A DNA stretch of 64,000 bases, from sequence record NC_047815.1, one strand, 5' to 3'. The notes beneath the pieces were generated by a model, which worked only from the letters and a program-made list of their open reading frames with translations, did not search any database and was not told the origin of the DNA. Below are positions 2,688 through 17,429 of this stretch, piece after piece; positions within the stretch are counted from its first letter, which is position 1, and the number at the start of each line of letters is the position of its first letter. The position numbers and the translations under genes were made by a program.

Positions 2688-3545
2688 TTATAAATACGAA
2701 CGGACAACCGATGCAAGCACAGGCCGTCCTAAATGTTTCGATAAGGATTTGGCATACGCTTGCGCAAATTCTTTCTTTGAATCGAAGCGGTGCTTGTGCA
2801 TTTTGAAGTTCTTCCTCAAAGTTTTAGCATCAACGCCAGTGTTGTTTACGTTAAGTTTGCAGAACGGTGCATTGACGTGCTTCCATCCGCTTTTAGCCGC
2901 ACCATATAGAGCATTATCACTCATGTTTAGCCCATGCTTTTCAGCAAACGTCATGATATGGGTTTTGAGCCGAATAGATCCGTCATAAGACACACGCATC
3001 TTTACCACAAGATCATCAGTCAGCTTAGCAGTATGTGTACGCACGCCATTCACACCACTACCGTTTTTCCACATATCCTTATTATTATCGGCGTCTGTGC
3101 CCCAAGCAAGATTCTCAAAACGATTATCCCAAGGAATATCATTCAAATGACGGACGAGGCGACAGCCAGCAGGGCAAGGCGGTCCGAATGTTTCGAGTAC
3201 GAGTCGATGCACACGAACTTTATGCCTTACACCGGAAGTGTCAGTTACGTGAAACTTCTGATATCCTTTAGTGCTGAACTGCATCAGGAAGTTCTTTGTG
3301 TATGACCAAACACGGCCATCGCGATACACAGCATATCGCACACCATAACAGTCCACATCAACATAGTCACCTTTTGGTGGCGCAATGTCTTTGCACTTCT
3401 CACCCTTCAAAATCTTTCTGCAATAAGGCAGTGCGATTTCATACTTCTTGGCAAGAGCTGTCATCGTATCGAACTTACCTGAAACCCAATCTGAACGAAT
3501 GCGCTGCGCTCTGTCAAATGCTTCGGCTGTTGTTAATCTGGTCAT
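2688..3545 (-). mobile_element. Free-standing HNH homing endonuclease (NUMOD4/HNH_3 type)
   Basis: YAVYRDGRVWS...VHRLVLETF...VRHLNDIPWDNRFENLAWGT..DN is the typical phage HNH signature. Confidence 0.85.
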
Positions 3546-3616: not shown

Positions 3617-4105
3617 TTATGCCCTCACCCAAATTGCACCTGCGCTGACGGTCTGTGTGAGTGATGGATCATCTGCTTGAACATACACTTCTAACACTCC
3701 ACTTGCGCCAGTAGGTCCAGTAGCACCAGTGTTGCCTGTAGGACCAATCCAACCACGAATACCCTGAATACCCTGCTTGCCTTTATCGCCTTCACGACCA
3801 CGAGCACCTGGACAGCCATCAGTGCCTCGACGACCATCAGTACCCATCAGACCGTTGATACCGTCTGAGCCATCAGAGCCAGGGATACCTGCTGGGCCAT
3901 AGCCAATATCGTTAACAGTAGGCAGTCCATTGATAACTAGCTTACCAACGTTTGGGATGTTGATAGAAAGCTGGCCATTCTGTCTGTCAAATACTCCATC
4001 AAGCGTATCAGTAGACAGCGTGCGTACTGATAGTCCTGTTTCTTGGGAAACGACTTCACCTGTTGAGTCGGCTTTAATCATTCCCACATCAATTTTTTGT
4101 ACCAT
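3617..4105 (-). CDS. Collagen-like (Gly-X-Y) fibre protein C
   Basis: 162 aa with 22-23 uninterrupted GXY triplets. Confidence 0.85.
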   Translation of the reverse strand: MVQKIDVGMIKADSTGEVVSQETGLSVRTLSTDTLDGVFDRQNGQLSINIPNVGKLVINGLPTVNDIGYGPAGIPGSDGSDGINGLMGTDGRRGTDGCPGARGREGDKGKQGIQGIRGWIGPTGNTGATGPTGASGVLEVYVQADDPSLTQTVSAGAIWVRA

Positions 4106-4118
4106 AACCTTTTACCTC

Positions 4119-4748
4119 TTACGGCCAGACGGCACCTTGATCTACATTTGGGTTAACCCAGATCGTCCCGACCTCTACCGCCCCTGGATTTGTAGTTGAA
4201 ACGATAATCCTTACGCGACCTGCAGGACCCGCAGCGCCAGTTGGGCCAGTAGGTCCCGTTGCACCAGTTGCACCAGTTGGGCCAGTACCGCCACGAGGAC
4301 CAGTAGGGCCTACGTTGCCATCAGGGCCAGTAGGGCCAGGCTCCCCACGTTGCCCTTGTTCTCCAGGCAGTCCGGGACGACCATCTTTACCAGCTAGACC
4401 CTGATTGCCATCTGGACCCTGAGCACCAGTACAGCCAGCAGCACCAGCAGCACCGTCGCGTCCGTCACGCCCATCTTTACCGTCAGCACCTGTAGCACCA
4501 CGAGCACCTTGACGACCTACTGGAATATCGCTTGCTGTTGGAAAGCCCGAAACACGTACAGACTCACCGTTAGCAAACGTTAGAGTCATGATACCGCTTG
4601 TTGAATCATAGCTACCGCTAGAGATTTCAGCAGCAGCCGTAGATTCCGCAGTAGACACAACCAACTTGCCGGCCTGTGCTCGCAACGTGGCATTCTCAAG
4701 CGAAGTGCCAGCAGCAATCAGACCGCTTTTAACTTGAACTAATGGCAT
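4119..4748 (-). CDS. Collagen-like (Gly-X-Y) fibre protein B
   Basis: 209 aa with 33-34 uninterrupted GXY triplets. Confidence 0.85.
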   Translation of the reverse strand: MPLVQVKSGLIAAGTSLENATLRAQAGKLVVSTAESTAAAEISSGSYDSTSGIMTLTFANGESVRVSGFPTASDIPVGRQGARGATGADGKDGRDGRDGAAGAAGCTGAQGPDGNQGLAGKDGRPGLPGEQGQRGEPGPTGPDGNVGPTGPRGGTGPTGATGATGPTGPTGAAGPAGRVRIIVSTTNPGAVEVGTIWVNPNVDQGAVWP

Positions 4749-6182
4749 TTACGTTTTCTCCGCTTGCGCAACGATATCCGTATTATGTACCAGAACGTCA
4801 CCAACGTAATAACAATCATAAGGCTCAACGTCTATGTCAACTGTCATGACCTGCTCATAGATGCGCTCGACTTCGTACACAAGAACAGGGCCTTTACGCC
4901 CAGCAACCTTCATGCCTCGACGAACATCACGCGCTGGTACATATCGCCACACAGTGTCGTTTACCAGTATTGGATGCTCATGCGTGAATCGCTGACCGTT
5001 GATCAAGTAGTAGTGGTCTTCTTGACCGTAGCGCAAGGCACGCACAGCAGCATGTTCGTTGTGACCACGCAGCGATTTGCTTGTGTAGTCACGGAACTCT
5101 TTGGGCTGTTCTGTACGAGCAAGCAAGCTATCACCTACTACAAGTTCTTCGACACGACGATCACCCAGCACGGTCTCAACTACGGAGCCGAACACGATAC
5201 AGCCAGATTGAACACCTTGAGGGTTACGTGCAACAAAGGTGATTGTGGCAGTAGCAGTAGCTGTGGGGCGACTTGTTTGACCTAGGTCAGTTACAACACA
5301 GGTAATCTTGCCTGTAAGTATCTTCTCAGAACCAGGTTCAACACGACCATCAAACTTAATCTGAACCGTGCTGGTGGTGTCATCTGCAATAGAGATATTC
5401 TCCATCTTGCTGATTGACCACTTGTACTTGTAGCCACCACGACCGCCACGCACGTTGACAGGCAAGTAAGCTAGGGCATTAAACAAGTCACTTCCCTGCA
5501 CCGATCGCTGTCCAACCATACTGACGTTTGAAGCACTAGCACTCAGTGTTTGAATCGTAGGCAGTGCAGGAGCAGGAGTACCTGCCGCTGTTGGATAAAG
5601 CCACGCAAACACACGACTGTCTGTTGGAACAACTGTTGATACTACGGCTGTTTCAATAGGAGCGGGCCCAGTAGGACCCGTTGCACCAGCAATACAGCTC
5701 GGACCATCATTGCCCCGTGGCCCTAAAGGACCAGTAGTGCCAGTAGCACCAGTCGGGCCTTTTCGTCCTACGGGGCCGGGATAACCAGGATAACCAGGCG
5801 GTCCTTGCTCACCATCTTCACCATCTGTACCATCTGTACCATCGAGACCCCGATTGCCAGAACCGCCTTCGCAGCCACTGACACCAGTTTCTCCGTCACG
5901 ACCATCACGTCCGTCACGACCAGTAGCGCCCGGCGCTCCTCGCTGACCGGGCTTACCTTCACCAAAGCTCGCTATAGTAGGTAGGCCACTGACTTCGACA
6001 ACTTCACCGTTCAGTTTGATGAACGTCAACACGCCGTTAGCACTAGAAAACTTTATCTTGGCTATCTGCGTTTGTGTCTGCAAGTCAGTGGTTTCAAACT
6101 GTAGCGTACCATCTGATGCAATGGCTTCTTTACCACTATCGTTAACATCTGTTGAGATCTGAGTGATACTCAAAGTTGTCAT
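4749..6182 (-). CDS. Collagen-like fibre protein A with Ig-like domain and C-terminal Hint (intein-like) domain
   Basis: 33 GXY triplets, a beta-sandwich-like segment, then C328-IVFGSVV...THEHP...VLVHN467-T. Confidence 0.85.
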   Translation of the reverse strand: MTTLSITQISTDVNDSGKEAIASDGTLQFETTDLQTQTQIAKIKFSSANGVLTFIKLNGEVVEVSGLPTIASFGEGKPGQRGAPGATGRDGRDGRDGETGVSGCEGGSGNRGLDGTDGTDGEDGEQGPPGYPGYPGPVGRKGPTGATGTTGPLGPRGNDGPSCIAGATGPTGPAPIETAVVSTVVPTDSRVFAWLYPTAAGTPAPALPTIQTLSASASNVSMVGQRSVQGSDLFNALAYLPVNVRGGRGGYKYKWSISKMENISIADDTTSTVQIKFDGRVEPGSEKILTGKITCVVTDLGQTSRPTATATATITFVARNPQGVQSGCIVFGSVVETVLGDRRVEELVVGDSLLARTEQPKEFRDYTSKSLRGHNEHAAVRALRYGQEDHYYLINGQRFTHEHPILVNDTVWRYVPARDVRRGMKVAGRKGPVLVYEVERIYEQVMTVDIDVEPYDCYYVGDVLVHNTDIVAQAEKT

Positions 6183-16718: not shown

Positions 16719-16739
16719 GATAGCCTCAATGTGGTGTCA

Positions 16740-17345
16740 ACCCGATGCACACTCAAGGGTGAAAGCCCGAATGCGCACCAGGTTGTCTTTCCAACTGTAT
16801 AGGATTTCACAGCCCCCGTCTCCCCTCTGAGATAGGTCTAGCTGCTTTCAGTGCCTGCGTGAGGTTGAAGTATCGGCCGATAGAAAAACGATAACAAAAA
16901 GCTCGGCTCTACGTACACGCATCACATCCTGCGGGCGTTATTCACTGATTAAGCGCATAGCAAGATTCTATGAATGACTACTAACTGGAATCTTGCGTCT
17001 CGGTGTGCGCCCCGCTAACCACCGTGAATTATGGCACACACTAGTCTCTCCTAGCAGTCCGGTCAAGCGAGTGTTCCCGTCTCCCCACTGAGATAGGTCT
17101 AACATGCTGCCTGTTTTAGAACACGCCCTAATCACAAGACCCGGGAAGAATCTTGCGACGGAGTTCGGACGTTAATACCTGTGGCCGTTATTTATCTCAC
17201 ATTTCAAGAGCAATTCAGCCATCGTCGAATGCACACGCGCCTTGCTCACCACTAGAGAGCGCGAAACATCTGGAAGTTAAAGACCGACGGCTGCGGCGAG
17301 TAGTCCTGTCAGGACAACTTAGAAAAACACGAGTGCTTTGCTAAA
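16740..17345 (-). ncRNA. Candidate large structured non-coding RNA or long structured leader (~600 nt)
   Basis: No credible ORF; at least seven stems, four with G.U pairs that work only on the minus strand; internal 26-nt duplication. Confidence 0.55.
16815..17101. repeat. 26-nt direct repeat (25/26 identical) at 16815-16840 and 17076-17101
   Basis: cccgtctcccc(t/a)ctgagataggtcta read directly from the sequence. Confidence 0.95.
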
Positions 17346-17387
17346 CTGTCTCTGCTATACAATTAATATTTACAGATTTTTAGCAAA

Positions 17388-17425
17388 AGAAAAGGGGCAA
17401 AGAAAATATTTATTTTCCGCCCCTA
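17388..17425 (-). terminator. Intrinsic terminator after the 590-aa gene
   Basis: AGGGGC-G-GAAAATA-AA-TATTTTC-TTT-GCCCCT-TTTCTTTT on the minus strand. Confidence 0.8.
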
Positions 17426-17429
17426 ATGA

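Follow-up and report, generated by a model that had tools for sequence, protein, structure and literature searches.

Erwinia phage vB_EamM_Yoloswag is a jumbo myovirus of Erwinia amylovora with a genome of 259.7 kb. Its collagen-like fibre protein gp103 ends in a Hint domain, and we consider it somewhat probable (roughly 55%) that this domain cuts itself out of the fibre tip, with a nucleophile of the short tail behind it resolving the thioester. The gene lies in a stretch of 64,000 nucleotides of the sequence record NC_047815.1, which is called the window throughout. Positions are those of the window, which are obtained by subtracting 62000 from the record position, unless another contig is named; the features are collected in Table 1. 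Phage fibres decide what a phage binds, and their maturation is known for few systems.

The original prediction, made from the DNA letters and their open reading frames, had placed a complete Hint domain at the C-terminus of a collagen fibre protein, and both parts of this statement are borne out. The collagen region is recognized by Pfam (Collagen, E 4e-14), and the Hint fold is found by profile search, AlphaFold2 (AF2) and Foldseek. The residues listed with it (Cys328, T400-H-E-H403, His466-Asn467, Thr468 and the tail) agree in identity and position with the translation of the minus strand, whose reading frame contains neither stops nor frameshifts. Also correct were the length of 140 residues without an endonuclease insert and the C-extein of ten residues, TDIVAQAEKT.

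Hint domains that have Cys1 and end in His-Asn but lack a nucleophile at position +1 are defined as type-A BIL (bacterial intein-like) domains (PMC4031507, PMC7664689, PMC7765530). A search with the single gp103 sequence matched such a BIL domain, 2lwy, over its full length (E 7.6e-4). Using a profile of 50 relatives against the PDB the value for 2lwy was E 1e-21, followed by BIL2 with 8e-13, classical inteins with 1e-8 or weaker and Hedgehog with about 0.01. The AF2 model of the Hint domain, built on an alignment of relatives, has a mean predicted local distance difference test score (pLDDT) of 94.1 and a predicted template modelling score (pTM) of 0.88. When this model was compared with the PDB by Foldseek, 50 matches at E<=1e-3 were obtained, all of them BIL domains, inteins or Hedgehog; 2lwy ranked first (template modelling score, TM, 0.73/0.81), BIL2 (6y75/6tmm) next, and then mini-inteins and Hedgehog 1at0. 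The Hint fold, a beta horseshoe of pseudo-two-fold symmetry, is confirmed for the C-terminal domain of gp103. The full-length monomer model of gp103 is poor in the collagen region and at the N-terminus, as expected for a trimer. No further Hint domain was detected in the 64-kb window with a custom Hint hidden Markov model (HMM) on six-frame translations.

Conservation was studied in 50 relatives of 24-77% identity, in 16 orthologues and in six cultured phages. The only invariant columns in the 50 relatives are Cys1, the Thr of block B and the terminal His and Asn, whereas 47 of them retain the block-B His and 38 have Gly at position -1. Cys1 is also present in all 16 orthologues and all six cultured phages, and the block-B motif TxxH is invariant in the orthologues. 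The ratio of nonsynonymous to synonymous substitution rates (dN/dS) of the Hint domain in the six cultured phages is 0.07-0.25 where it could be estimated, figures which are rough because synonymous sites are near saturation, and it is not above that of the N-terminal domain, the collagen region or the middle domain. Following up the prediction among orthologues, a search with residues 176-327 returned 11 homologues, all of 476-478 residues; the Hint domain is kept in every one of them, so that no Hint-less allele was found in this set, and the catalytic residues are kept in the 16 orthologues and likewise in the six cultured phages. Because one stop codon could delete a useless domain ten residues from the protein end, and the domain persists all the same, sequence comparison supports a Hint domain that is functional rather than decaying or selfish.

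A wider search with HMMER against 1.84 billion representative proteins (the library in the following) gave 291 relatives at E<=1e-3, and the library counts rest on 171 Hint copies with the His-Asn aligned. In the IMG/VR viral contigs one peptide pattern found 135 relatives, by which the module is widespread, and the 80 loci that were kept hold 62 distinct, non-close copies. Since the relatives are cluster representatives or stem from one search pattern, these counts are samples and no census. All sequences entered the comparison unaltered. We call a Hint copy terminal if it ends no more than 20 residues from the C-terminus of the protein. In total 83 of the 171 library copies are terminal, with a median tail of about 7 residues (range 1-20), and 88 are internal, often in tandem arrays; of the IMG/VR copies 50/62 are terminal. 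Terminal and internal copies form separate sequence subgroups, as the nearest neighbour belongs to the same class in 90/100 cases, and they differ in length (mostly 148-155 residues for terminal, 125-136 for internal copies).

The N-terminal partners of the domain vary and include collagen with an Ig-like domain, collagen with Calx-beta, LCCL, PASTA, FN3, a 1300-residue virion protein and unknown domains. Fibre-type proteins in the BFVD match the Hint model at TMq 0.81-0.87, terminase and polymerase inteins at 0.72 or less. The syntenic fibre clusters of phage NCTB and of a 311-kb metagenomic jumbo phage each encode two Hint-ending proteins. Comparing Yoloswag with pEa_SNUABM_5 (window 4752-6182 against L007:2020-3453), the identity is 88% in the Ig-like domain, 68% in the Hint domain and 52% in the N-terminal domain, which suggests, from sequence identities, that the distal Ig-like domain has been exchanged between phage lineages by recombination. 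Because the same Hint domain and tail end proteins with swapped distal domains, the Hint domain seems to travel as a portable end module. Phage NCTB additionally encodes, directly after its collagen-Hint fibre gene, a free-standing Hint-like open reading frame of 153 residues (BN7874_135, L004:5698-6159, minus strand; HMM E 2e-26), which ends in His-Asn plus three residues including a Lys and has no counterpart in Yoloswag.

Position +1 behaves differently from the four invariant columns. Thr468 had been listed as the +1 nucleophile among the splicing residues, and conservation of such a nucleophile is not supported. Thr occupies +1 in 15/16 close orthologues, as it does in the phages of Erwinia and Dickeya; elsewhere it is replaced by Val (Yersinia phage fHe-Yen9-02), Met (Alcaligenes phage Afa-NA1) or Ala (both Hint-ending proteins of phage NCTB), the library relatives P0021, P0022 and P0023 carry Ala, Ser and Ala, and some relatives have Leu or Lys. 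The residue is no nucleophile in 73/83 terminal library relatives and in 49/50 terminal IMG/VR relatives. Judged from these sequences, a +1 nucleophile lies outside the conserved mechanism of the terminal Hint family. The Yoloswag clade may well splice classically, as a local variation, since a single change at +1 has been reported to turn BIL domains into efficient splicers (PMC7664689). As the +1 nucleophile is not conserved, we place the gp103 domain nearer to type-A BIL domains than to splicing mini-inteins, and because its own Erwinia/Dickeya clade has Thr at +1, we call it BIL-like and not a textbook BIL domain. The broader proposal of the original prediction, a functional autoprocessing module instead of a selfish intein, was strengthened by comparison (invariant residues, selection, the lack of empty alleles, distribution), although it loses the +1 nucleophile as conserved machinery and, as described below, the need for a collagen chaperone.

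What is shared by nearly all tails is a lysine. It is present in 81/83 terminal copies of the library and in 50/50 terminal viral copies (131/133 together). Among tail residues the share of Lys is 12.8%, against 3.8% elsewhere in these proteins, whereas Arg is not enriched (2.0% vs 3.0%; Fisher test on K:R, p 9e-11). In 48/83 terminal library copies the protein ends 0-2 residues past the last Lys, and in 49/88 internal copies Lys occupies position +1 itself. Lys476 of gp103 is invariant in 16/16 orthologues and 6/6 cultured phages, and so are D469, A474 and E475. A published explanation for the tail Lys was not found in the literature searched.

Two known routes to a resolved thioester are of interest here. 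Type-A BIL domains cleave mainly at both ends and can join their two flanks once Asn cyclisation has freed an amine that attacks the thioester (PMC4031507). In BIL2 the N-terminal thioester is reported to be resolved by the epsilon-amine of a Lys in the C-flank, yielding an isopeptide bond, and the N-flank can also be conjugated to other proteins (PMC8616854).

The fold, together with the catalytic residues and how they are conserved, the purifying selection and the spread of the family, leads us to infer the following reactions, their order, the nucleophile and the purpose. Following translation, and probably not before the Ig-like distal domain is folded or the fibre trimer is formed, Cys328 would attack the carbonyl of Gly327, aided by T400 and H403, and an N-S acyl shift would produce the thioester. 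Asn467 would cyclise with the help of His466 and thereby cut off the tail. The thioester would be resolved by a nucleophile of the tail, which in the Yoloswag clade could be the side chain of Thr468. For the family as a whole an amine would take this part: the new alpha-amine of the +1 residue, as in type-A BIL domains, or the epsilon-amine of Lys476, as in BIL2. According to computed masses a Hint domain of 16.25 kDa would leave the 50.4-kDa precursor, and the mature fibre chain would consist of residues 1-327 plus the tail decapeptide (34.2 kDa); hydrolysis of the thioester would instead give a chain of 33.1 kDa.

The purpose could be that of a removable C-terminal module which assists or checks the maturation of the distal part, by analogy with auto-cleaving fibre chaperones. 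Such C-terminal intramolecular chaperones of the Peptidase S74 type are portable modules on trimeric phage fibres and are cut off after maturation. No Pfam match to peptidase S74 exists in gp103. The suggestion that the domain is a chaperone for the collagen helix was weakened by the comparison with paralogues: gp101, gp102 and gp95 share the N-terminal domain, the collagen region and the cap and have no Hint domain. As gp101 and gp102 have all these parts without it, the collagen helix is unlikely to need a Hint domain.

Several points weigh against self-excision at the fibre tip. Processing of gp103 is a prediction from sequence and model, and the label 'virion structural protein' is silent on which part of gp103 is in the virion. 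In the models the tail has a low pLDDT of about 56, so the distances of Lys476 and Thr468 to Cys328 are not readable. The enrichment of Lys in the tail could serve another need, for example solubility or the environment of the Asn cyclisation, and any chaperone role would concern no more than the distal domain. Furthermore, all Pfam Hint-type matches in gp103 and its relatives are below the gathering cut-off; for gp103 this is Hint_2 with 25.3 bits against a cut-off of 28.4, covering residues 328-378 only. For the same reason annotation pipelines miss the domain. The roughness of the dN/dS figures belongs here as well.

The alternative that survives best, unlikely as we think it, is cleavage at the N-terminal junction only, in the manner of Hedgehog or S74. 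The Cys328 thioester would be hydrolysed or hit by a small molecule, the Hint domain would leave whole with its tail (17.3 kDa), the fibre would end with Gly327 (33.1 kDa), and His-Asn and the tail would have no chemical role. This is the simplest route to shed a C-terminal module, BIL domains do yield mainly cleavage products (PMC7664689, PMC4031507), and a small residue at -1, here mostly Gly (38/50), favours it. However, His-Asn is kept in 50/50 relatives and the Lys tail in 131/133 copies though neither would be needed; because both are kept, both junctions appear to matter, which counts against N-cleavage alone. D469, A474, E475 and K476 of the tail are invariant in orthologues, and Hedgehog Hint domains, which are purely N-cleaving, lack the terminal Asn.

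The Hint domain might also never leave the mature particle and serve there as a knob with a structural or receptor-binding task, perhaps keeping a latent thioester in reserve until the phage meets its host. In favour of this, no other domain of the chain lies farther out, a Hint fold can be a stable domain, and the full-length family is labelled 'virion structural protein'. We regard such a permanent tip as quite improbable, because receptor-binding tips usually vary fastest, while here invariance is confined to the four catalytic residues and the surface varies. The part that is swapped or recombined is the neighbouring Ig-like domain (88% against 68% between Yoloswag and SNUABM_5; Calx-beta and others elsewhere), and from general chemistry an equilibrium thioester would not be expected to survive as long as the virion does.

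Very unlikely in our opinion is a conjugation in trans, in which the Hint domain would pass the C-terminal carboxyl of the fibre to a Lys or another amine of a different molecule, a virion protein or a neighbouring fibre, and so create a covalent isopeptide link during assembly, like BIL2 with its ubiquitin-like domains. BIL2, the second-closest solved relative, reportedly needs no ATP to join its N-flank to lysines in other proteins (PMC8616854), and the fibre cluster encodes several potential partner proteins. Against this, the conserved Lys sits in the tail of the domain itself, pointing to a reaction in cis; a partner protein whose features co-vary was not identified; and one specific acceptor is hard to reconcile with a module found on very different proteins across phages.

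Least credible is a selfish or neutral mini-intein near the end of the fibre gene that splices out (Cys328 to Asn467/Thr468) and persists because its loss is hard: the full class-1 residue set of gp103 including the +1 Thr, the structural similarity to mini-inteins and the free-standing HNH endonuclease genes gp100 and gp93 in the cluster speak for it, but 140 residues leave no room for an endonuclease domain or its remnant, no Hint-less allele is present among the 11 homologues, viable relatives have lost the +1 nucleophile (Val in fHe-Yen9-02, Ala in P0021 and P0023), the site is the junction to a tail of ten residues and no conserved site of an essential enzyme, so that a stop codon would delete the domain free of cost, the NCBIfam intein models TIGR01445 and TIGR01443 do not match gp103 at E<=0.1, nor does Intein_splicing of Pfam, the domain has a dN/dS no higher than that of the domains hosting it, and five related phages which lack gp100 at its position keep the Hint domain.

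Beyond self-excision with a tail nucleophile, a farther-reaching role is conceivable, which we offer as a tentative idea of low probability. Terminal Hint domains might act as ATP-independent ligases in phage fibres, converting a C-terminal thioester into a Lys isopeptide, normally with the Lys of their own tail, giving a branched, capped end, and in some phages with a Lys on a different protein of the virion or fibre, giving a covalent joint. If true, isopeptide-forming splicing, known from a single BIL domain of a ciliate, would also occur in a large class of viral structural proteins.

Table 1. Parts of gp103 and adjacent genes, with positions in the window.
Feature	Position	Strand	Description
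gp103 (HOR66_gp102, YP_009789508.1)	4749..6182	-	477 residues, intact open reading frame; annotated 'virion structural protein'; phrog_38766 matched full-length
gp103 N-terminal domain, residues 1-75	5958..6182	-	Common to paralogues gp102, gp101 and gp95
gp103 collagen-like G-X-Y region, residues 76-175	5658..5957	-	Pfam Collagen match; PDB collagen matches
gp103 post-collagen cap (~176-199) and all-beta Ig-like domain (~211-320)	5202..5657	-	Part of the N-extein directly before the Hint domain
Hint domain, residues 328-467	4782..5201	-	140 residues; sequence, profile, AF2 and Foldseek matches; without endonuclease insert
Cys328 codon, Hint position 1	5199..5201	-	Predicted nucleophile of the N-S acyl shift; preceded by Gly327
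Block B, T400-x-x-H403 (T-H-E-H)	4974..4985	-	TxxH motif
His466-Asn467, block G	4782..4787	-	End of the Hint domain; predicted site of Asn cyclisation
Tail (C-extein) TDIVAQAEKT, residues 468-477	4752..4781	-	10 residues; Thr468 (+1) codon 4779-4781; Lys476 codon 4755-4757
gp103 stop codon	4749-4751	-
gp102	4119..4748	-	209 residues; paralogous collagen fibre without distal domain or Hint
gp101	3617..4105	-	162 residues; paralogous short collagen fibre without Hint
gp100	2688-3545	-	Free-standing HNH endonuclease gene between gp101 and gp98

The ATG of gp103 overlaps the stop codon of gp104 (ATGA), and its own stop codon abuts the ATG of gp102; because of these contacts we consider gp103 to be part of a tightly packed fibre operon beside the baseplate genes. 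The N-terminal domain, with three beta-strands between residues 40 and 65 in the AF2 model, is presumed to be the attachment end of the fibre. In the alignment of the 16 orthologues every third collagen column is an invariant Gly. The motif of the post-collagen cap also occurs in gp101 and gp102. Strands 214-319 of the Ig-like domain are modelled at pLDDT 73-91, and its matches to Ig-domain folds are weak.

The collagen regions of gp101, gp102 and gp103 (3617-6182) each have a Cys in a G-C-x triplet at an equivalent place, and Cys104 and Cys163 of gp103 are invariant in orthologues; these cysteines may form interchain disulfide knots. Order and sizes of the three genes are kept in all relatives examined, a gp103 counterpart of 476-723 residues being followed by proteins of about 210 and about 163 residues, which raises the question whether the trio forms separate homotrimers or one mixed fibre.

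No gene corresponding to gp100 is present at its position in Y3, AD1, SNUABM_5, SNUABM_7 and fHe-Yen9-02, all of which keep the Hint domain. A homing link between gp100 and the Hint domain was rejected on these grounds, and by its absence from the five related phages gp100 appears as a lineage-specific insertion unrelated to the Hint domain. In the first 49 kb every annotated gene is read from the minus strand, and these genes belong to a head, tail, baseplate and fibre module. A segment of about 0.7 kb (16719-17429), flanked by a run of small hypothetical genes and by gp113, is free of annotated genes and contains no open reading frame longer than 63 residues. In the whole 64-kb window no tRNA genes and no Rfam families at gathering score were found, and a promoter and terminator scan of the window did no better than on shuffled sequences.

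That an 'intein domain' is present has been noted by annotators before: the Y3 orthologue bears the note 'putative phage tail protein, contains intein domain', and the names in NCTB are similar. In Yoloswag this label sits on the wrong genes, namely on gp98 (657-2678, 'putative large intein domain protein') and on gp96 ('contains intein domain'; outside the window, at L001:16470-16676), in neither of which Pfam or the custom HMM finds a Hint domain, whereas the true carrier gp103 is named just 'virion structural protein'. Homology between gp98 and the Hint-ending proteins of NCTB and the metagenomic jumbo phage is confined to the N-terminal part of the latter and to about residues 1-517 of gp98, so the intein name was apparently transferred to gp98. 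A study of Hint domains on phage fibres was not found in the literature searched, where 'Hint' and 'intein' in phages concern terminase, ribonucleotide reductase (RNR) and PolB inteins. New here are the assignment to the BIL side, the terminal phage-borne subfamily, the rule of the Lys tail and its link to BIL2 chemistry.

If self-excision of the Hint domain is true, phage fibres would have a second, chemically distinct class of self-removing C-terminal modules, working by a Hint thioester and Asn cyclisation and not by a serine protease, and BIL domains, whose natural role has so far been vague, would gain a concrete biological setting. How a thioester is resolved without a +1 nucleophile is a long-standing question, which the near-universal tail Lys makes testable by mass spectrometry.

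Among the systems to which gp103 can be compared, the PT-HINT domain (PF07591) of polymorphic toxins gives sub-threshold Pfam matches in several relatives. It precedes a C-terminal toxin which it is predicted to release by autoproteolysis, while the gp103 domain is followed by a short tail only and by no toxin domain. Peptidase S74 chaperones, which use a Ser-Lys dyad, are a possible functional analogue without relation in sequence or fold, the predicted chemistry of gp103 being a Cys thioester plus Asn cyclisation. The Hog domain of Hedgehog (1at0) shares the Hint fold (TM 0.68/0.73) and the place as a C-terminal module, and removes itself from an N-terminal functional domain via a Cys thioester. 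Hog lacks the terminal His-Asn; it has a region that recognizes sterols and uses cholesterol as its nucleophile (PMC7765530); gp103, unlike Hog, keeps the His-Asn, after which only ten residues follow.

Class-1 mini-inteins (gp41-1, Npu DnaE, Ssp DnaB) have the Hint fold and the four catalytic positions in common with gp103, which also offers a hydroxyl at +1. The similarity to them is weaker, with E 1e-8 or worse, and lies mostly in blocks F and G, and unlike these inteins the gp103 domain occupies no conserved site of an essential enzyme, has no intein-free alleles that we could find and is followed by a C-extein of just ten residues.

Closer is BIL2 from the polyubiquitin-like (BUBL) locus of Tetrahymena thermophila (6y75/6tmm), the second-best solved relative (E 8e-13, TM 0.72), which has a Lys in the C-flank as the phage tails do. 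It is eukaryotic, though, and flanked by ubiquitin-like domains, whereas the flanks in gp103 are the Ig-like domain and the decapeptide.

The closest match is the type-A BIL domain of Clostridium thermocellum (2lwy), which, like gp103, has Cys1, TxxH and His-Asn in about 130-150 residues and no endonuclease. Type-A BIL domains are found in variable, non-enzymatic proteins of surface type, just as the gp103 domain stands behind a swappable fibre domain, and their +1 residue is not a nucleophile (PMC4031507), as in the wider terminal subfamily. They differ in that the gp103 domain is neither embedded nor tandem but sits at the extreme C-terminus with a Lys tail (1-20 residues in the subfamily), is borne by a phage fibre, belongs to a separate subgroup that is about 20 residues longer, and has Thr at +1 in its own clade. 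Type-A BIL domains are thus the nearest known relatives of the gp103 Hint domain, which together with its phage relatives represents a 'terminal' subfamily beside them.

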